DNA of 63,166 nucleotides, filler included, from Perkinsus chesapeaki ATCC PRA-425 (Eukaryota > Protista > Perkinsozoa): NCBI GenBank assembly GCA_013115145.1. It is 5 parts of 5 records of this genome, joined end to end, with 100 filler letters (N's around TTAATTAATTAA, not from the genome) between each part and the next. Parts side by side here need not be neighbours in the genome. Positions count along the whole stretch, not along the records: positions 1 to 28,729 come from JAAPAO010000465.1; 4 more parts are not named here. One strand, 5' to 3'. The notes under the pieces were generated by a model. It had not been told where the DNA came from. It made no database searches and saw nothing but the letters and a program-made list of their open reading frames with translations. The stretch's first letter is position 1. Every line of letters begins with the position of its first letter. The position numbers and the translations under genes were made by a program. Shown one piece after another: positions 1 through 28,729 of the stretch.

Positions 1-93
1 TTACTAGCCTAGCCTGGGGCGGGCGCGACGGACCCTCTCAGACACAATGGGAGACACTATCATAACAGCGCACCAGGTGATGCCTCATCATGA

Positions 94-352
94 GGGGCTC
101 TTTCACAACAAACGTGAGCTTGGATTTTTCGAAGCGGGTGCAAAGTTTAGCGACTCGAAGTGAGCAGGGAGATACACTTCAACACGTAAGATCGGGGCAG
201 GGTGGTTCACCGGTATGTTAAGTAAGTGTTAAGTACTAACTTAATCGTATTTACTAAGATATCACCCGAGAAGGGTTTAAGGCGGGTGCCCCTCTAACCT
301 GGTAATAGGAACGATTTTAAGCTCTAAAGGGAGTTGCTTGTGAAAGAGCCCC
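94..352. mobile_element. Candidate MITE with 15-bp terminal inverted repeats
   Basis: GGGGCTCTTTCACAA (94-108) and its exact reverse complement TTGTGAAAGAGCCCC (338-352) bracket a non-coding 259-bp segment; no target-site duplication seen. Confidence 0.4.
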
Positions 353-795
353 GATAACTCCGCTGCCAACTCGAACAGTGATCATCCCCATCATCAGTGA
401 CCTTATACAGTGATCATCAAGAGCAGTAATCCTTCGGTCAGGTAGCCATGTTATCGAACTGGTGTTGGGATTAGGGAGATAGCATTTGGGCTATACATTC
501 TGGACTCTGCCTGTCTTTGCTCTAACTAACAACTGCTCAAGGCCTCTTCTCGCTTGAGTTGGTAATCGCCTATATGGCCTACGAAAGTGCCTCAAGGGAA
601 CAGTTCCCAGCATATGTCGATAAATCCTCCAAACTCAACACTAACGAAAAATGCTAATGGGTGTTACCTTTATAACATGCATACATAACATTCATATCAG
701 TAACAATGTCCCTAGTAGAGAGTCAGTGCTCTTGTGCAATCCTTTTCTTACAAGCTGCTGCTGGATTGCCTGAACAGCTATCCCCTTTTACTACC

Positions 796-2696
<1,901 letters not shown>

Positions 2697-2804
2697 ATTT
2701 AACATCTGTATAACACCATCATCTGGGATTTATCAATATGAATGCTTCTAGACTATGCCTATTGAGTTTGCCAGTACGGGGGAGCTGACTACTTGAGAGC
2801 AGCA

Positions 2805-3625
2805 ATGGCGACAGCATTGGACGCAGCTCTGCTGGACCCCCTCCTAACCGGGTCGCCAACAGATGTCGGTCTAGCGGTGACTCCGGATGATATATTCTGC
2901 CAGAACGTACTTGCCCATGCTAACTTGAATACCACGTTTGAGCTGTCGCAAGTAGGCTAGTGCTTGGCTTGATTGGGCTGGCGATGGTTGTGGTGGTCAG
3001 ATAGTAAAGGGCTTCCGTAATGCTGAATATGACCCTTCCAAGTTCCCATGTGTTCGGATACGATACTGGCGGCCACAATGTAAGCTATCATAGTGATATG
3101 AAGTGGTGATGGTGTCAGCAGGCACAATAGCAGTCTTTCGCAGTGGTAAGATCCAGGCTACTGGTGCGAGCAGCCCGGAAGATGCTCGCTTGGCAATGCA
3201 TCGGACGGCAGCCAGACTGAAGGCAAGAATGAGGTAAGGTGCTTGTGAGGCGTGTGTCCCTTCATACCCTCTTCAGCTGCGAACGTGTGAAGTTCTCGGA
3301 CTTTACTTGTGATAATATCCTTGCCACATATGACTTGGGTTCGACCATGAACTTGCTTGGTCTGTCAAGAGCTCCTGTATTCGCCAATGTTGTGGCCTAC
3401 GAGCCCAGTCGATATCCAGCTGTAAGCTCTCCTTCGTCGACGCTCTCTACTGTATGCCTTTTCTTCCAGGTTGTCCTTCGTGACCCAGCAAGAGGAGTCA
3501 CGGTTGATGTGTTCTCCACTGGTCGAGTGAGCATGAAGGGTAAAGGAAGTATCGAGAATCTTTGCAGTGCGCTGAACGAGATGCTCCCCCACATCCTCGA
3601 GTACCGCTGCGAATCATTGATGTAG
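2805..3625 (+). CDS. TBP: TATA-binding protein family member (divergent TBP / TBP-like factor)
   Basis: Spliced reading gives both TBP repeats: QNVLAHANL...NAEYDPSKFP...IAVFRSGKIQATGA and DNILATYDLG...AYEPSRYP...VDVFSTGRVSMKG. Confidence 0.85.
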
Positions 3626-5681: not shown

Positions 5682-6932
5682 TTAAAACTGAGACATCTTA
5701 GCTTCAAGATTGCGCGCCAGAACATCCATGAAAGCTTCGGAGGTGAGATACTGAGTCTCCTTGATCTCTGATGGTGGGCAGTTATACACACACAACGCCA
5801 AGTCTTTAGTCATGGCGCCATTCTCGATGGATTCTACACAGACTTCCTCTAGCGCGGTGGCGAACTTTGCTAGCCTTTCATTGTTATCAAGCTTAGCACG
5901 ATGGGAAAGTCCTCGGGTCCAGGCAAAGATAGAAGCCACTGGATTAGTAGAGGTCTTCAAACCCTTCTGATGTTGACGATAATGACGAGTAACAGTACCA
6001 TGAGCAGCCTCAGCCTCGATAGTTTTACCATCAGGGCAAACCAAGACGGAAGTCATCATTCCCAATGAGCCATATCCTTGAGCAACAATATCAGATTGTA
6101 CATCACCATCATAGTTCTTACAAGCCCACACAAAACCACCAGATGATTTAATTGCCTGAGCAACCATATCATCAATTAATCTATGCTCATACCAGATACC
6201 AAGCTCTTCAAACTTTGACTTATACTCTGTATCATACATCTCCTGGAAAATATCCTTAAAGCGTCCATCATACTTTTTAAGGATTGTATTCTTAGTAGAG
6301 AGATAAAGTGGCATCTTCATATCCAATGCATAAATGAAACAGGAACGAGCAAAACCATAGATAGACTTGTCCGTATTGTACATGCCTTGAATCACTCCAC
6401 CGTCTTTATCAAAGTGGAAAACCTCAACGTTGACGGGCTCGCTACCATCATCGGGCGTGAATGTCATAGTGAACTTACCAGCGCCCTTAACAACATGATC
6501 TTGGGCTTTGTACTGGTCACCATGACCGTGACGTCCAATGATAATAGGCTGGCTCCAACCGGGCACCAATCTAGGTACGTTCTTACAGAGGATGGGGGCA
6601 CGGAAAATAGTACCATCAAGAATGTTCCTGATGGTACCATTAGGTGATCTCCACATCTTCTTTAAGTTGAATTCCTTTACACGAGCCTCATCAGGAGTAA
6701 TGGTAGCACATTTAATACCAACATTATACTTCTTAATAGCATTAGCAGCATCAATAGTAACTTGATCATCAGTAGCATCACGGTGTTCAATAGATAAATC
6801 ATAATATTTAATATCAATATCAATATAAGGTAGGATTAACTTCTCCTTGATCCAAGCCCATATAATTCTGGTCATCTCATCACCGTCTAATTCAACAACG
6901 GGATTCTCAACTTGAATCTTCGGAAAGGACAT
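5682..6932 (-). CDS. IDH: NADP-dependent isocitrate dehydrogenase, copy 1 (intronless)
   Basis: 416-aa ORF with [42 protein letters not shown] and [12 protein letters not shown]. Confidence 0.98.
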
Positions 6933-7107
6933 TGGGGAAGTGTTAAATGAACTAAAGAGATTGTACTTTCTAAAATGGTTCGGCCGTCCCTATTTGACGC
7001 TGCATCATCAAAATACTAGCCTTAAATTGAAGCACCCATCACCAGCAGCTGCTAGTCTTCCAACGCTACCAAAGTCTTCGGGTGCTTCAAAAATACCCTT
7101 TTTTCGA

Positions 7108-7183
7108 AAATCTTATTGTTATCCATTGTCACCTATACCAATCCTTAGTGGATCGGTCTACCAGGCTTAATGGATCCTGCGAT
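7108..7183 (-). promoter_or_regulatory. Conserved 76-nt non-coding element, copy A (upstream of IDH copy 1)
   Basis: Ungapped 67/76 match to 59405-59480 on another contig; function unknown. Confidence 0.55.
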
Positions 7184-7838
7184 CAAAAACACCCAACAAC
7201 TACTGCGAGTCGCGGGAAGCTTTCCAACTGTGGGAACTCGGCACCGTACTACTTAAGTACCGACCGTTTTTTCGTTACATTCGTATGCGTTTCTTATATA
7301 TGGCCGAGCGTTTCATGAACGCCTCTACTTCGACATCGTAAACAATTTAGTACGCTTATTCTTAAATATGTTGGTTATGACTGTTTCAAGCATGGGTTGC
7401 ACTTCATATCTTAAACGAAACTAACCCTTTTGTTTAGGAGGCATTGACTACTTCTTAACGTAACAATCTAATGATACACCTCAAAAGTTTGACCAACCAC
7501 ATCAACCGTGTTGGCGGTAAAAATAAACAGAACTCGACGCAAAGATGATGCAACACTGTTACAGTCGGTTATCACGAGACTTGGATGCATTTGCGACAAG
7601 GACTCGCTTCTTTCGACTGATAATAATATACCGCGAACTACCGTACCCTCGATGCTCATATCTTTTGGCATCAAGCTCGACCATCGCGGATACTACAAGG
7701 CTATAGTTACAACAACACAAACTAGCTTATCTGAAACGGGCCACGGATGCCGATAGAAAAAAACAATAGTAGCAGAAAACTGGTCCACTCACTGCACGTT
7801 CCGGTATCATTAACTTCAATATTGAATCAAACTGATCA

Positions 7839-9086
7839 TTAGAATGTGGCCATCTTGCGCTCAAGATTTCTGGCAAGCACGTCCATGAAATCTTCAGAAG
7901 TTAGATACTGTTCTTCCTTGATTTCACTTGGACTGCAGCCGTACACACACAGAGCCAAGTCCTTGGTCATGGCACCACTTTCGACAGTCTCAACACAGAC
8001 TTCCTCCAAAGCCTGGCTGAAGCGAGCTAGCAGCTCATTGTTATCCAGCTTAGCACGATGGGAAAGTCCTCGAGTCCAGGCAAAGATAGAAGCCACTGGA
8101 TTAGTAGAGGTCTTCAAACCCTTCTGATGTTGACGATAATGACGAGTAACAGTACCATGGGCAGCCTCAGCCTCGATAGTTTTACCATCAGGGCAAACCA
8201 AGACGGAAGTCATCATTCCCAATGAGCCATATCCTTGAGCAACAATATCAGATTGTACATCACCATCATAGTTCTTACAAGCCCACACAAAACCACCAGA
8301 TGATTTAATTGCCTGAGCAACCATATCATCAATTAATCTATGCTCATACCAGATACCAAGCTCTTCAAACTTTGACTTATATTCCTTATCATACATCTCC
8401 TGGAAAATATCCTTAAAGCGTCCATCATACTTTTTAAGGATTGTATTCTTAGTAGAGAGATAAAGTGGCATCTTCATATCCAATGCATAAATGAAACAGG
8501 AACGAGCAAAACCATAGATAGACTTGTCCGTATTGTACATGCCCATAACAACACCACCACCATCCTTGAATTCAAACACCTGCTGCGTGATAGGTTCAGT
8601 GGCTCCTGCTGGAGTGTAGCTAATAGTGAATGTACCAGGGCCAGCAACAGCATCGGTGGCCTTATACTGATCACCATGACCGTGACGTCCAATGATGATC
8701 TGCTCAGTCCAACCGGGCACCAATCTGGGTACGTTCTTACAGAGGATGGGGGCACGGAAAATAGTACCATCAAGAATGTTCCTGATGGTACCATTAGGTG
8801 ATCTCCACATCTTCTTCAAGTTGAATTCCTTTACACGAGCCTCATCAGGAGTAATGGTAGCACATTTAATACCAACATTATACTTCTTAATAGCATTAGC
8901 AGCATCAATAGTAACTTGATCATCAGTAGCATCACGGTGTTCAATAGATAAATCATAATATTTAATATCAATATCAATATAAGGTAGGATTAACTTCTCC
9001 TTAATCCAAGCCCATAGAATTCTGGTCATCTCATCACCGTCTAATTCAACAACGGGATTCTCAACGTGAATCTTGGTGGCGGCCAT
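7839..9086 (-). CDS. IDH: NADP-dependent isocitrate dehydrogenase, copy 2 (intronless tandem paralogue)
   Basis: 415-aa ORF with the same motifs; long tracts are near-identical to copy 1 at the nucleotide level. Confidence 0.98.
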
Positions 9087-13697: not shown

Positions 13698-16602
13698 ATG
13701 CCAAAAGGGGGCAATAGTTCATCGAAGGAGACCAACGGCAGCAGCAACAACAACAATGCATCGCAGCAGACCATGGGACATGGAGACCAGTCCTTGGTTG
13801 TCCATGTTGGGAGTTTAGAACTACTCTGTCAGAATCTGCCGAGGCCTAGACTTCTACCTAGTGCCGAACCTGGAAGTAAGAAAGAGGGTCTGTTGGGGGT
13901 CTGTATAGAACATGGACCATTATACAGCGACTTATTACCTTACTTTTATGTTACCTCTTTAACCTTCTATTAACACTACCTTACCTTTTACCTTCTATTA
14001 ACACTACCTTACATTTTACCTTCTACTAACACTACCTTACCTTTTACCTTCTATTAACACTACCTTACCTTTTACCTTCTATTAACACTACCTTACCTTT
14101 TACCTTCTATTAACACTACCTTACATTTTACCTTCTACTAACACTACCTTACCTTTTACCTTCTATTAACACTACCTTACCTTTTACCTTCTATTAACAC
14201 TACCTTACCTTTTACCTTCTATTAACACTACCTTACCTTTTACCTTCTATTAACACTACCTTACCTTTTACCTTCTATTAACACTACCTNNNNNNNNNNN
14301 NNNNNNNNNNNNNNNNNNNNNNNNNNNNNNNNNNNNNNNNNNNNNNNNNNNNNNNNNNNNNNNNNNNNNNNNNNNNNNNNNNNNNNNNACCTTACCTTTT
14401 ACCTTCTATTAACACTACCTTACCTTTTACCTTCTATTAACACTACCTTACCTTTTACCTTATATTAACACTACCTTACCTTTTACCTTATATTAACACT
14501 ACCTTACCGTTTACCCTTGTGAGGAATCCTTGTTTTACTGTTGGAGCTATGAACATGTTAAGCTGTATTATGTATATCAGTTCATCCCTTGGATCATCTC
14601 AGGTCTGGTTGATAGTGTGGCCTCGGCAGCTGCTCAATACTATATGACAGATGATAACATATACCTATCCTTCCAGCCATATACTGCTGCTGCCTCTGAC
14701 CCGAATACAGCCCAGGGCACAACTACTACCAATCAACCTGCTGTGGAGACTGTGGTGAAGACCCTTCCCAAAAATGTGAGACCCACGCCTCGGAAGTGTA
14801 CCGATATTTAACCATACAGATGAAAACGGTCGAGTTCAATTGTGATGTTGCGCTGTCATTGCCAGCCAGCCTCGGAGATGTCCGTCAGTAAGTCCGCTGC
14901 CATATGGACTTGCTATTCATTTCTCCACTTCTTCTTTTAAGGTTCAGAGTTTGCCTCTATCGCCGTGGAATTATCGATAACGAGCTTCTGGCTGATGCCT
15001 TAGTTGAGATACCCATTACCACTGAAGTGTCCGAGTCCAATGTGAGAAGCCTCGTGAGAGCGCATGGAAGACTCTTTCAGATCATTATGGTGTCGAGAAG
15101 CGACGGCACGCCTATGGTCCGCGTGACGCTGTCGATTCAGCTGGTGAGGGCCCACGCTTCCAGTACAGTGGAGTAGTCCCCGGTGTTAGGTCGTCACAGA
15201 GCGGCTTATAATGGTACATTTTGCGGAAGAGTTGAGGAAACTTGTGACTGCACAGACCCTCAGTTCGGGCAAAGATGACAATGGTAGCCCAGCGGAGCGT
15301 TCAAGGGATACAGTGGAGGCCATACAGAGGTGAGGCTTATAGGATACGTACGCATCTACTGCGCGAGCGAAGGGCGTCGAGAATGCAACAAGAAATATTA
15401 GACGTGTTGTCGCTTCGAGCCACCACCGTGAGCATCATTGTCTCAGATACGTGTATGCGTGCAGTGCCATCCGTCACTTATGGCATTTCGTATATGATAT
15501 CCTAACCTGGAAGTCAGGCTACACCAGGACCTGGCTATTCCTCATCGCTATAGTTTACAGTGAATATTTATGGTACCTCCACCACAGCTGCACAACATTA
15601 GTTTGGCCCTCTCAGGTTGGTCTTCTTACTCCTCTGCTGTCATATAGTTCTATCCGCGTCCAGTACATCCGAGTTCACTTCGCCAGATGAGGTCGATGCC
15701 AACCTTGCATTTGTCAAGCAGCAGGCTGATGGTCTATCGTATGAACTCCTTTCTGCCCAAGTCACCACGCCTCCGCACTAGGTACATCAGCGAACTCCTC
15801 GCCACCCGCGTATCCTATCGAGTGGGTATGTTGGTGTGCGCATGCGTGCTGTTTTTAACCCCAAGGCCCCACGTTACAGTCTGTGTTATCATCATCCTTT
15901 GCCGTACCTATTGGGCCCAGGCTCTTTACCAGACGATAAGATGCAGACGCGAGACCAAAAGGCGCAAAGGCTCTATGATGTCAGCGAAGCCTCGGTTCCC
16001 AGAGCCTCGATAGCCTGATTCTCGCAGGTTCACCTCAGCTGCGTCATCTCAGGATTGCGCGCCTGGCAATCGGGCCATCACAGTGGAGGTTTATGAGAAC
16101 CAGCGATGGTGGGTTGGCAAGTGGTCGGATAACCTACTGGCTGTCGAGCGTTACGCTTGGAGCGATGAAGCCGGTAGGAATGGTAACAAAATAACAGTAG
16201 ACTTCTTTTCGACCAGGGACGTCTCGGCGCACCAAAGAGGATGTCCATCTGCCTCCGCCTGTCGGTGATAATATATGGCAATGGTCTTCGCTTTGGCGAG
16301 TAGATGCCCGCCCTGAAACCCATGAGACTGATGCTGATGGTTGGACTTATGCCAGGGACTTCGGTTCAGGTAGGCCACACCATGTGCTTTGGCCTCGAGG
16401 GTGTCCACCCATTTCAGGCCAGTGGTCGGCCACTAGAGGCATGGGGGATTTCGTAAGGCGAAGGCGTTGGACCAGAACGGCCCGCTTGGTAGCTGTCAAC
16501 AGCACGCATAACTCTGAGGGAGACGGCAACGGCAATACGGCTGGGGATGAAGGCGTGAGACAGCGACCGCAGAAGAGTGTTGAGGCAGCACCATTGGAGT
16601 GA
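13698..16602 (+). CDS. Dysferlin (DysF)-domain protein, Pex23/Pex24-like, multi-exon
   Basis: C-terminal VEVYENQRWWVGKW...WQWSSLWRVD...DADGWTYARDF...DFVRRRRWTR is the DysF signature; a hydrophobic region lies upstream. Confidence 0.7.
13936..14516 (+). repeat. 28-bp minisatellite (TAACACTACCTTACCTTTTACCTTCTAT)n, intronic, spans an N gap
   Basis: Head-to-tail units with no spacers; a variant unit carries ACATTTT and TACTAAC. Confidence 0.95.
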
Positions 16603-25586: not shown

Positions 25587-26519
25587 TTATGACCAAACTG
25601 CAAGTACAGCCATGAAGGCATAACCCAGAAGGAGCATAATACCCTAACAACATACCTCAACTGCAGTGGAGAGAGGACTTACCTTCCCCAAGGTCTGAGT
25701 AGTATGCTCCTCGAATGCCATTGGTAAAAACTCAATAGTACAGACGTAAATGAAGGTCCCAGCGGCAAGTCCGGAGAAAATAGCTGATACCAAATCTGGC
25801 AAAGGCAATATGGAAAATCTCCCCCGGTGGCCTATCTTACCCGCCGTAGCCTCGACCGTCTGGGAAATTATCATACCGAAAGCAATACCCAATGGCGTGG
25901 ATAAAGCGAAGGCCACCCATTGAGCCCATGTAGCCTGTTTGGTCATACTTGCGCTTGCAAGGGCAACCCCGAGAGCGTAAGCTGCCAATCCTTTATGAGC
26001 AATTGATGCTACAGAAATGGCTAGAGTAGATTTAACACCAACTGCACTGCCCAGAGATAAACCCTCGGCAAGAGAGTGAATGGTCAAGGCAACAAATACA
26101 AGAATAGCTGAAAAGATCCCCTTCGGGGATGACTCGGAGACGGCTGCCGCTGGCCCCTCAGATCGCACAGTGTCGCCGGCATTAACCTTTGATGCTTCTT
26201 CATCTACCTCCCCATCCTCGGATATGACTTTGGCAACCGAGTAAGTATGGATAAGTTTATCAAGTAAAAAAAGTAAGATAAATGCATTGCCAGCAAGACA
26301 CTGTCCCAGAGGGAAATCTAAGTATGCTTTTAGGGTAGTCGAGGCACCATCAAGCATATGATTGAATGCCACAGAAAGCATCACACCACTTGCTAAGGCA
26401 CAGCCACAACCGAACCAGAGTGACCCTCTACCAGCGACAGACGCCAGTAGCAAACCGACAAAGGCCACTACGACTTCGACAAGTATGACAACTATCTTTA
26501 TTATTAAATCTGGTGACAT
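25587..26519 (-). CDS. ZIP (SLC39) metal transporter A
   Basis: ASGVML...HML, ALTIHSLAEGLSLG, HKGLAAYALG, TPLGI and AAGTFIYV motifs; last exon GIMLLLGYAFMAVLAVWS*. Confidence 0.92.
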
Positions 26520-26704
26520 GTAACGAGAACAAAGGCCTAGTACATAGTCGAAATAACATTTAAAGATAACTCAATAACTCTATGAAGGGAATCAAACAGG
26601 ACGTATTCAAGATGTATCTATCGATCACAAGGTTCCTGGGGACACCACGGCAGTCGCGGATTAAATAACAAAGAAGGAAAGATGAGGTTGAACAATGTAG
26701 CAGA

Positions 26705-27723
26705 TTAATGATCATGGCCATCATCGAGCTCGCCATGATCATGTACATCAGACCATATTGGAAGAATAGCCATCAAGGTGAAGCCAATTATAAACATTAG
26801 AGCCTGAAAGAAGACATGATTCTACAACAGTGATGACGAAAGGACTCAAGCGGCGGCGGTGGTACTTTGATTAGAAATCTATCTCGGTTGGACTTGAAGG
26901 TTAGTGGCATGAACTCCATCGTGCTTACATATATGAAGGTACCAGCTGCAAGGGAATTGGCAATACCACCAAATATCCCTAAAATAGAGCATATATAACA
27001 TTATTAATAATAATACTACTTACCTGCACTATCTTCACCAAGACTACCAAGCCAACCAATAATAATACCGATAGGTGTACCAAGAGAGAATATGCCACCG
27101 TAAAGGATTAATCGATATGTAGCAACTTCAGCTTCAACTAGACTAGCACCAAGAGCAAAGGCTGCTAACCCTTTATGAATGAGTATAGCTATCAATGTTC
27201 CATATAGACCATCGACATCACTGGCAGCACCAGTAGCCATACCCTCCAATATAGCATGAATTGATAGAGCTAAAAATACAAAGACCGCAGAAGTCTCAGT
27301 GAGCGCGTCCGGATGGATATGATGATGATGGTTCTCCTGCAAAGACTCTTGCTCTTTAGGAACCTCAGCTTGGCTCTCGGCATCAAGCTCGGGACCATGT
27401 TCACATATAGCAGGTTGATGTTTATGCTCGAAATAAGAGTGAATCCCTTCTTCAAGTAAAGCAAGGAACCCGATAGACAATGCAGCTAAGAGGTAGGCAA
27501 ATGGGTAACCATTTAAATAATCACTTGACCAAGACTCTAACCCTTCTACACCTTCAGGTAGACTATGTGTTAGGCCAGTAGCTAGCAAAACACCACTGGC
27601 AATAGCACAACCGATTGTAAAGAACTTAGACTTCCTAAAGTAAAAGGATATCCAAATACCCAAGATAGCCGCTAATAGAGTAGTAAATATAGACACGAGC
27701 TTCCAGACGCCTATGGAGTCCAT
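26705..27723 (-). CDS. ZIP (SLC39) metal transporter B with His-rich loop and tail
   Basis: ALSIHAILEGMATG, HKGLAAFALG, HHHHIH loop, AAGTFIYVSTMEF; ends WSDVHDHGELDDGHDH*. Confidence 0.92.
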
Positions 27724-28289
27724 TACAATAAAATGGAAGGGACAAAGGTCTGATTAACAGTAAGCGAGATGCCATACCATCCACCACGACGATTATTATC
27801 AAGACAAAACGTGCTCGGATCAATCTCGCTAGACAGCAGCTTGTGTCGAGCGGTTCAATCAACTACTAGCCTAGAGTCAGTTGTCTAGCTCGAACTACTA
27901 GACCTAGACGCGGAAAACGCACCCACAGGATTCATCATCTCAACGGTGTTGGGTATGTTCTCAAAAGCGTTTATTTAGAATTCATCCCATAGGAGGACGT
28001 TCTGGATTAGGTCTTGCCCCCTGCAGGCCCCGTCTAAGTCGTGTCATTAGTCGACACTGAATGTACCACCCAATACGCCACAACAAGAGACGTATGTAGT
28101 TTTAGTAGGAAACTTGACAATATTGATGATTATTATAACCCTGTCGGGGTTGAGTAACCGCGAGAATAATCACAACACTATCATCTGCAGTGTGCAGATT
28201 ACAGTATTAACGCTCACTAAGCGAGGAAAAATGAATGATGAACCTTGTGGATACGACGACAATGCGACGGGAGCACGTCGTCACAATAA

Positions 28290-28729
28290 TTAATGGTCAT
28301 GGTCATGATGGTCATGATTATCACTATGATCATGTACCTCTGCCCAGATAGGGAGGATGGCCATAACAGCGAATCCCGCGATAAACATGAGGGCCTACGA
28401 TTGGACATAGATAGAGTATAATGTGATGTGCGTAAGTTACCTTGATTAAGAATCTGTCGCGGTGTAGCTTGAAAACAATGGGCATGAACTCCATCGTGCT
28501 TACATAGATGAAGGTACCAGCTGCAAGGGAGTTGGCAATACCACCAAATATCCCTAAAATAAAGCGTATATAACATTATTAATAATAATACTACTTACCT
28601 GCGCTATCTTCACCAAGACTACCAAGCCAACCAATAATAATACCGATAGGTGTACTAAGAGAGAATATGCCACCGTAAAGGATTAATCGATATGTAGCAA
28701 CTTCAGCTTCAACCAGACTAGCACCAAGA
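28290..28729 (-). CDS. ZIP transporter C, 3' part only (5' end beyond the contig end)
   Basis: Near-identical to ZIP B over 28480-28729 including an intron; ends WAEVHDHSDNHDHHDHDH*. Confidence 0.85.

Follow-up and report, generated by a model that had tools for sequence, protein, structure and literature searches.

Silent sites of the converted tracts of a tandem isocitrate dehydrogenase gene pair are shifted towards AT in Perkinsus chesapeaki

A stretch of 63,166 nucleotides (nt) of Perkinsus chesapeaki ATCC PRA-425, a parasite of oysters and clams, was analysed (assembly GCA_013115145.1; this whole stretch is referred to as the window). Proteins encoded in the window have source names with FOL47 locus tags of P. 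chesapeaki. The first 28,729 positions derive from JAAPAO010000465.1 and carry a tandem pair of genes predicted to encode NADP-dependent isocitrate dehydrogenase (IDH; Table 1). The two genes were found to be homogenised by gene conversion over two long tracts, and these tracts display a shift towards AT at silent sites that is specific to the P. chesapeaki lineage when compared to P. marinus and P. olseni. At the two loci where this could be observed, the IDH pair and a pair of ZIP zinc-transporter genes, the shift was confined to the near-identical tracts.

Tracts were defined on the DNA alignment of the two IDH copies, with boundaries given in alignment columns. The first seven codons (columns 1-21) are 67% identical between the copies, and are followed by a shared tract designated S1 (columns 22-378, 98.9% identity), a diverged tract D1 (columns 379-546, 64%), a second shared tract S2 (columns 547-1053, 98.8%) and a diverged tract D2 (column 1054 to the end, 69%). 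Within the shared tracts, 282 of 288 encoded residues are the same in both copies, and third positions differ between the copies in 0-5% of codons, compared to 0.25-0.60 between species. As silent third positions are also homogenised, the identity of these tracts is not a product of protein constraint. The mosaic of near-identical and diverged tracts reported in a preliminary description of this DNA, silent sites included, was thus upheld (approximately 99% versus 64-69% identity).

Comparison was made with five orthologous IDH loci, namely those of P. marinus ATCC 50983 (L001), of three P. olseni assemblies (L002, L004 and L005) and a second, homeologous locus of P. marinus (L003; GG673069.1, IDH at 6001-7251). 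Tandem pairs were identified at L001, L002, L004 and L005, while L003 possesses only one IDH, which is of the upstream type; neither another IDH nor a DUF4460 gene was called at L003, and a search for a second long IDH open reading frame (ORF) found none. The divergence of L003 from the P. marinus tandem locus amounts to 6% for the shared tracts and 10-19% for the diverged tracts. Every tandem pair examined (P. chesapeaki, P. marinus and the three P. olseni assemblies) was found to have the mosaic described above, with boundaries that are nearly unchanged from pair to pair. S1 and S2 are 96-99% identical within species as opposed to 83-90% between species, while D1 and D2 are 73-87% identical from orthologue to orthologue as opposed to 61-70% between upstream and downstream types. 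As an example, D1 of the P. chesapeaki downstream copy shares 80-85% identity with the downstream copies of the other species and 61-68% with any upstream copy. The shared tracts therefore group by species and the diverged tracts by gene position, from which it follows that the IDH genes were duplicated before the three species separated, with conversion having continued independently in each. The mosaic is an ordinary case of concerted evolution by interlocus gene conversion, well documented across the three species. The upstream IDH frame of L005 (P. olseni GCA_013115135.1, 6001-7252) was observed to be broken by a 1-nt insertion at alignment column 199, which may point to an allele that has been inactivated or else to a mistake in the assembly.

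The composition of these tracts differs between the species. GC content at third codon positions (GC3) of the IDH shared tracts is 0.35 in P. chesapeaki and 0.57 in both P. marinus and P. olseni. For the diverged tracts the corresponding values are 0.50, 0.52 and 0.59, and for flanking single-copy genes (1,600-2,500 aligned codons) they are 0.51, 0.56 and 0.63. Expressed as P. chesapeaki GC3 minus the mean of the relatives, the shift amounts to -0.21/-0.23 in the shared tracts (95% confidence interval -0.29 to -0.15), to -0.09/-0.02 in the diverged tracts and to -0.095 across 971 flanking single-copy codons. The excess shift of the shared tracts is thus about -0.12 (permutation p ~1e-4), and no contiguous block of 288 flank codons was found below -0.156. 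The shift peaks in the middle of S2, reaching -0.42 at columns 721-780, and fades towards the tract ends. The exons adjoining the pair and the spacer between the copies lie at the flank average with no extra shift, and a regional effect around the locus was rejected on these grounds. Given that their shifts are similar to those of the flanks, the diverged tracts follow the genome at large, in which P. chesapeaki shows a mild AT shift (3-4 GC points below its relatives for the whole genome). The preliminary description had proposed that the converted tracts are AT-shifted, opposite to the classical GC bias of conversion, and had considered that single-copy orthologues in relatives might have the same low GC in these segments. 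The direction that it proposed is borne out by the values above, and the orthologous segments of the relatives were not found to be low in GC (GC3 0.50-0.65). The single-copy P. marinus homeologue has a shared-tract GC3 of 0.55-0.62, the same as the tandem pair of that species.

Within P. chesapeaki, the contrast between tracts is smaller than had been described. Whole-tract GC is 0.38-0.40 for the shared tracts and 0.48-0.50 for the diverged tracts. First codon positions differ (GC1 of 0.45-0.47 versus 0.52-0.64), which is due to a different amino-acid make-up, second positions are about equal, and GC3 is 0.34-0.36 versus 0.40-0.56, so that approximately half of the GC contrast lies at silent sites. 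The four 120-nt GC values counted by hand in the preliminary description were reproduced exactly (0.350, 0.275, 0.517 and 0.500), but they represent extreme windows when set beside the whole tracts. Its AT-rich example at 6721-6840 (columns 93-212) does have a low GC, yet lies mostly within a patch that is low in GC3 in all three species: at columns 121-240 (6693-6812 and 8847-8966), GC3 is 0.05-0.30 in each of them, despite a third-position divergence of 25-40%. The AT-rich composition of that patch is ancestral, older than the species split and actively maintained. The AT shift is real but smaller than the hand counts implied, being in part ancestral or driven by amino-acid content, while what remains is specific to the lineage and, at the two loci that could be compared, restricted to converted DNA. 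At the start of S2 (columns 541-600; 6333-6392 and 8490-8549), third-position divergence between species was observed to be low (0.15-0.25 versus 0.3-0.6 elsewhere), which could reflect an extra constraint on RNA or DNA.

The rates of silent change were taken at those silent sites that have the same base in P. marinus and P. olseni. Changes in P. chesapeaki from G or C to A or T (strong to weak, S>W) occur at a rate of 0.43 in the shared tracts, 0.31 in the flanks and 0.33 in the diverged tracts, and changes in the opposite direction (W>S) at 0.13, 0.30 and 0.24, respectively. In counts, the shared tracts hold 48-51 S>W changes against 7-10 W>S changes. Overall, the shared tracts have undergone less silent change (0.32 versus 0.41); they are more directional and not faster, and a faster approach of these tracts to a new equilibrium was rejected for this reason. 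The commonest changes are C to T at third positions (27), followed by G to A (14), and since these two types stand in a similar ratio in the flanks, the tracts are not peculiar in strand asymmetry. A strong codon bias of IDH is seen in every species, with G and A avoided at four-fold sites (G 0.03-0.13), ATA avoided, and AAG and GAG preferred. On this background, the P. chesapeaki shared tracts have gained T, which makes up 0.80 of two-fold pyrimidine-ending codons (0.52 in the flanks; 0.50 in the diverged tracts, p=0.011) and 0.62 of four-fold codons. A is also raised at two-fold purine-ending codons (0.30 versus 0.09-0.13), against the preference of the family.

Sequence context was examined for the same changes. 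The ratio of observed to expected CpG in the shared tracts is 0.48 in P. chesapeaki (16 CpG) and 0.64-0.88 in the relatives (32-43 CpG), with 0.77 for the whole window; elsewhere it is 0.58-0.64 in the single-copy Aldedh region (positions 1-3000) and 0.42 in one diverged tract. Third-position C had changed before G in 12 of 14 cases, as compared to 15 of 28 in other contexts (8 of 14 before A, 4 of 8 before C and 3 of 6 before T). This is a weak hint of a CpG component in the shift. With regard to repeat-induced point mutation (RIP), for which C to T change in a CpA context, a TpA/ApT ratio above 0.89 and a (CpA+TpG)/(ApC+GpT) ratio below 1.03 were taken as criteria, no signature was found in the shared tracts (0.73-0.76 and 1.41-1.44, respectively, and no preference for CpA). 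Furthermore, both IDH ORFs are intact, showing no degradation by stops or missense changes. The RIP-like process suggested in the preliminary description was therefore discarded.

A second locus was provided by a cluster of three ZIP genes (25644-28729) near the end of the same contig. The segments 26863-27154 and 28438-28729 constitute the only other long repeat in the window and belong to the tandem paralogues ZIP-B and ZIP-C, which are 97% identical over a tract comprising the exon-1 tail, an intron of 44 nt and the initial 73 nt of exon 2; beyond this tract there are 15 differences in 43 nt. The contig probably ends there because the two genes are near-identical. GC3 of the exon-1 tail (45 codons) is 0.20 in P. 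chesapeaki, 0.47-0.49 in P. marinus and 0.58-0.60 in P. olseni. Over the last 87 codons of ZIP-B exon 1 it is 0.16-0.20, and over the whole of exon 1 it is 0.32, as compared to 0.51-0.52 in P. marinus and 0.54 in P. olseni. The CpG observed/expected ratio of this exon is 0.50, with 0.79-0.80 and 0.77 in the two relatives. The intron within the tract has a GC content of 18% in P. chesapeaki, 49% in P. marinus and approximately 61% in P. olseni, and is a single case, the IDH tracts having no non-coding part; putative short introns of flanking single-copy genes differ only slightly between species (0.47-0.48 versus 0.50-0.53). The P. marinus orthologue of ZIP-B is an inverted pair (L006:3638-4604(-) and 6001-6967(+)) that is 95% identical, has a GC3 of 0.51 and shows no AT shift. 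The shift thus appears to touch non-coding DNA, and it recurs at an unrelated gene pair, where it is again specific to P. chesapeaki. As the intron is shifted too, a neutral process is favoured over codon selection. Conversion mediated by cDNA, which was considered owing to the IDH genes being intronless among intron-rich neighbours, was rejected as a general route, given that the near-identical ZIP tract contains an intron. No match to the remainder of ZIP-C was obtained in a protein search with the N-terminal 150 amino acids (aa) of ZIP-B.

Depth of assembly unitigs was used to assess copy number. In the run of the source sample (X1), the flanks and spacer are at a depth of 96-99, the diverged tracts at 83-103 and the shared tracts at 187-195 (S1 187, S2 195), which places the shared tracts at 1.9-2.0x and not 3x. 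Neither a protein search nor 90% clusters yielded a further Perkinsus IDH cluster above 80% identity. The preliminary description had named conversion from a third, AT-rich donor copy as one explanation; as a copy that still exists, such a donor was rejected on the basis of this depth and these searches. A second haplotype of P. chesapeaki, with approximately 6% divergence and a higher AT content in the shared tracts, was identified in runs X2, X6 and X7. Run X2 contains a pair of versions of the shared tract, both with a depth of about 2x (173 and 170), the alternative one differing at 13 of 223 nt. Among the best-supported haplotype variants listed, there were 15 S>W and 7 W>S in the shared tracts and 4 and 5, respectively, in D2 and the 3' flank, all of these being small numbers. 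The second haplotype carries its own homogenised version, which over these variants is further AT-shifted in the shared tracts and balanced in D2 and the 3' flank.

These observations bear on the direction of change. Three-taxon parsimony returned a W>S excess in the relatives (28:7 in P. marinus, 29:11 in P. olseni), but a GC bias in those species was rejected, since such an excess is probably created artefactually when the outgroup is AT-rich and sites are close to saturation. In P. marinus, the tandem lineage shows 6 S>W and 4 W>S changes and the single-copy lineage 13 and 6, with no gain of GC in either. An AT shift in P. chesapeaki is favoured over a GC gain in the relatives, because the composition of P. 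marinus is static with or without a partner gene, and because the second P. chesapeaki haplotype, seen in an independent sample, is further AT-shifted. A signature of GC-biased gene conversion, in the form of a W>S excess or a GC3 gain in converted tracts, was not found: P. chesapeaki shows the opposite, and the shared tracts of the relatives are at background.

The explanation that we favour, as plausible if somewhat short of probable, is that an AT-directed process is tied to conversion in P. chesapeaki; its causal dependence on conversion and its biochemistry are our inference. An old tandem IDH duplicate, older than the split of the three species, is subject to recurrent interlocus gene conversion that keeps two tracts identical, while D1 (clasp region), D2 (C-terminal) and the first seven codons stay distinct, presumably through selection combined with insufficient homology. 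The AT-directed process would act on the converted DNA in the P. chesapeaki lineage alone, raising S>W and lowering W>S change at silent sites; it would also affect the intron in the second gene pair and would add to the milder AT drift of the whole genome. The S>W excess in converted tracts is consistent with this, the IDH shifts given above being in agreement with ZIP-B/C. The likeliest cause would be a bias of the conversion or repair event itself, which may take the form of an AT-favouring correction of heteroduplex mismatches, or of C to T damage to single-stranded recombination intermediates that is then spread to both copies by conversion. A broader version of this proposal holds that a recombination- or homology-linked AT-directed process evolved in P. 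chesapeaki, is absent from P. marinus and P. olseni, acts genome-wide on duplicated sequence, whether by an AT-biased correction of mismatches or by deaminating DNA that is repeated or converted, and contributes to the AT-rich gene patches; we regard this as rather unlikely.

Several points weigh against a link between conversion and the AT shift. The two loci are a lead and not proof, as both come from one 29-kb stretch and the pattern was noticed post hoc, with ZIP-C being visible for 292 nt only and any homogenisation beyond this hidden by the contig end. To our knowledge, no AT-favouring repair mechanism has been described in P. chesapeaki. IDH silent sites are not neutral, given the codon bias in all species. 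Furthermore, P. chesapeaki is the outgroup of the three species and the root lies on its branch, so that its changes cannot be polarised by parsimony, which is in any case unreliable at silent sites near saturation (~30-50% differ); the direction of change rests on indirect arguments, namely the stasis of P. marinus and the haplotype contrast within P. chesapeaki. Low GC3 also occurs outside the near-identical tracts. ZIP-A, only 31% identical to ZIP-B, has a GC3 of 0.42 (no orthologue of it was found in the fetched loci of the relatives), and the single-copy Aldedh exons at 970-1302, which have no known paralogue, have a GC3 of 0.33-0.38 versus 0.47-0.68 in their orthologues (a shift of -0.15 to -0.30), with introns of 33-35% GC in this stretch (970-1345). 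These two cases, together with the lower GC of the whole genome and with the 9.7% of 119-codon flank blocks that reach -0.16, fit the view that base composition is patchy by region and that the IDH shared tracts and ZIP-B/C happen to sit in AT-shifted patches, the link to homology being coincidental. This view is difficult to reconcile with a shift that switches on and off at conversion boundaries inside one gene, twice and in both copies, while the spacer and neighbouring exons show no extra shift; moreover, no 288-codon flank block comes close, and the shifts of the three shared tracts do not overlap those of the six diverged tracts. We consider coincidence unlikely, although it deserves to be taken seriously.

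Three further explanations were considered. An AT-richer donor, either a third IDH copy that is now lost or unassembled or a divergent homeologous haplotype, may have converted the shared tracts of both genes. Divergent homeologous versions of the locus do occur in Perkinsus genomes, as exemplified by the 6% divergence of L003 in the shared tracts of P. marinus and by the AT-richer second haplotype of P. chesapeaki. Such a donor is nevertheless improbable in view of the twofold shared-tract depth and the failure of the searches to return a further IDH, and it only moves the question to why the donor is AT-rich, with the same being needed at the ZIP pair. Selection on codon usage would instead require T-ending codons to have become optimal in P. 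chesapeaki, with selection strongest where a highly expressed gene encodes its conserved catalytic core. The codon bias of IDH in all species, the location of the shared tracts in conserved parts of the protein, the predominance of C to T change with its gain of T at two-fold pyrimidine codons, and the presence of the upstream copy in RNA assemblies are in keeping with this. It is, however, quite improbable, as the ZIP intron is shifted as well, the diverged tracts of the same expressed mRNA are unshifted, A-ending two-fold codons have risen against the preference of the relatives, and conserved and non-conserved codons of the flanking genes have nearly the same GC3 (0.50 versus 0.525). Methylation of cytosine in duplicated DNA followed by deamination, with a loss of C above all at CpG, would account for the lowered CpG ratios of the shared tracts and of ZIP-B and for the frequent replacement of C before G, but only about one third of the transitions are at CpG, and the CpG loss follows in part from the loss of C and G at third positions. 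The CpG ratio is also reduced in the single-copy Aldedh region, no RIP signature is present, and a literature search on 5-methylcytosine in Perkinsus was without result; this explanation is very improbable.

The homogenisation itself agrees with known concerted evolution of tandem paralogues by interlocus (ectopic) gene conversion in its mosaic structure, in the grouping of identical tracts by species and of diverged tracts by orthology, in the homogenisation of silent sites and in its recurrence in three species. The mechanism of homogenisation is the same; what is unusual here is the resulting composition, along with tract boundaries that are nearly conserved from one species to the next. 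GC-biased gene conversion is known to raise the GC3 of converted paralogues, such as histone and Hsp70 genes and duplicates in yeast, Arabidopsis and human. The IDH pair resembles this in having a compositional shift that is confined to conversion tracts and seen at silent sites, but in P. chesapeaki the sign is opposite (GC3 of 0.35 against a background of 0.50), and in P. marinus and P. olseni there is no shift. Fungal RIP has in common with the process first proposed for this locus a homology-dependent C to T shift of duplicated DNA, from which the IDH pair differs in the lack of a CpA to TpA context, in its negative indices and in copies that are identical and intact rather than degraded. 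AT-biased gene conversion has reportedly been proposed for organelle genomes, the term being used in reports on plastomes (PMC4524490) and yeast mitogenomes (PMC7846184). The likeness lies in an AT-directed outcome of recombinational repair between repeated copies, while the present case is nuclear, involves tandem protein-coding paralogues and is found in one species of the genus.

With regard to the gene products, both IDH proteins match Iso_dh (PF00180; 8e-65 and 2e-64, residues 8-381) and are 89% identical to each other. The upstream copy, being the one searched, aligns end to end with the solved IDH2 structure 5h3f (E 1.8e-201, residues 1-412 versus 1-411) and also matches IDH1 structure entries. 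Both genes are predicted to encode the eukaryote-type homodimeric NADP-dependent enzyme (IDH1/IDH2 type). The closest IDH from outside Perkinsus (P0005) shares 79% aa identity, and orthologues of the downstream copy are present in P. marinus and P. olseni. In IDH2, the counterpart of D1 (aa 127-182) spans residues about 127-183, which we take to be the clasp region that forms the dimer interface. That D1 and D2 have been kept free of conversion across species suggests, as judged from sequence, that the two isoforms may be functionally different in these parts, and the protection of D1 in three species suggests paralogues kept from, or tuned for, heterodimer formation. Contigs that match exactly were present in two DNA studies and in an RNA study, which confirms the sequence of the pair. 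Contigs of the RNA runs (X6, X7) match the upstream copy exactly over 7672-8941, private tracts included, while the private tracts of the downstream copy (within 5682-6554) are almost without RNA contigs. The two isoforms thus seem to be very unequally expressed in those cultures, though the downstream ORF is conserved in three species.

Table 1. Positions in the window of the IDH and ZIP genes, the tracts of the IDH copies and the spacer between them.
Feature	Position	Strand	Remarks
Downstream NADP-isocitrate dehydrogenase gene	5682..6932	-	416 aa; intronless, intact ORF
D2, downstream copy	5682..5879	-	GC 0.48, GC3 0.56
S2, downstream copy	5880..6386	-	Strongest lineage-specific shift to AT at third positions
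D1, downstream copy	6387..6554	-	GC 0.482, GC3 0.46
S1, downstream copy	6555..6911	-	GC 0.381, GC3 0.34; includes ancestral low-GC3 patch (columns 121-240)
Spacer between IDH copies	6933..7838	.	906 nt, GC 0.418; not homogenised
Upstream NADP-isocitrate dehydrogenase gene	7839..9086	-	415 aa; intronless ORF; PF00180 at 2e-64
D2, upstream copy	7839..8036	-	C-terminal ~65 aa; GC 0.49, GC3 0.55
S2, upstream copy	8037..8543	-	Partner 5880-6386; GC 0.402; GC3 0.36 versus 0.59-0.65 in relatives
D1, upstream copy	8544..8708	-	aa 127-181; GC 0.497, GC3 0.40
S1, upstream copy	8709..9065	-	Partner 6555-6911; GC 0.387, GC3 0.34
ZIP-A	25644-26519		Only 31% identical to ZIP-B
ZIP-B	26863..27723	-	Exon 1 27016-27723, 44-nt intron, start of exon 2
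ZIP-C	28438..28729	-	Tandem paralogue of ZIP-B, cut off by contig end

The spacer between the IDH copies was found to contain a dispersed high-copy repeat at about 7008-7275, with a unitig depth of approximately 1,400-1,600 (flanks ~97) and many different loose ends. A contig of run X2 joins position 6960 to 7547, skipping 586 nt at single-copy depth, which indicates that the spacer insertion is polymorphic between haplotypes. Within 13902-14588, an assembly gap (99 N, 14290-14388) is flanked by a C/T-rich tandem repeat array with a unit of 28 nt, for which 15 register copies were counted.

The common view is that paralogues gain GC through conversion, and this expectation underlies readings of isochores, codon usage and false signals of selection. 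If the link between conversion and the AT shift is true, the IDH pair would be a nuclear counter-example to GC-biased gene conversion and a warning against assuming the sign of conversion bias in protists. As the same tracts are unshifted in the sister species, it would also offer a natural comparison of three species in which to study the repair step that determines which way conversion is biased. For one of these species, P. marinus, transformation and CRISPR tools are available (PMC8062965). For the multigene families of Perkinsus, it would mean that silent-site composition is specific to lineage and tract, which would affect phylogenetic markers and codon-based inference for these shellfish parasites.

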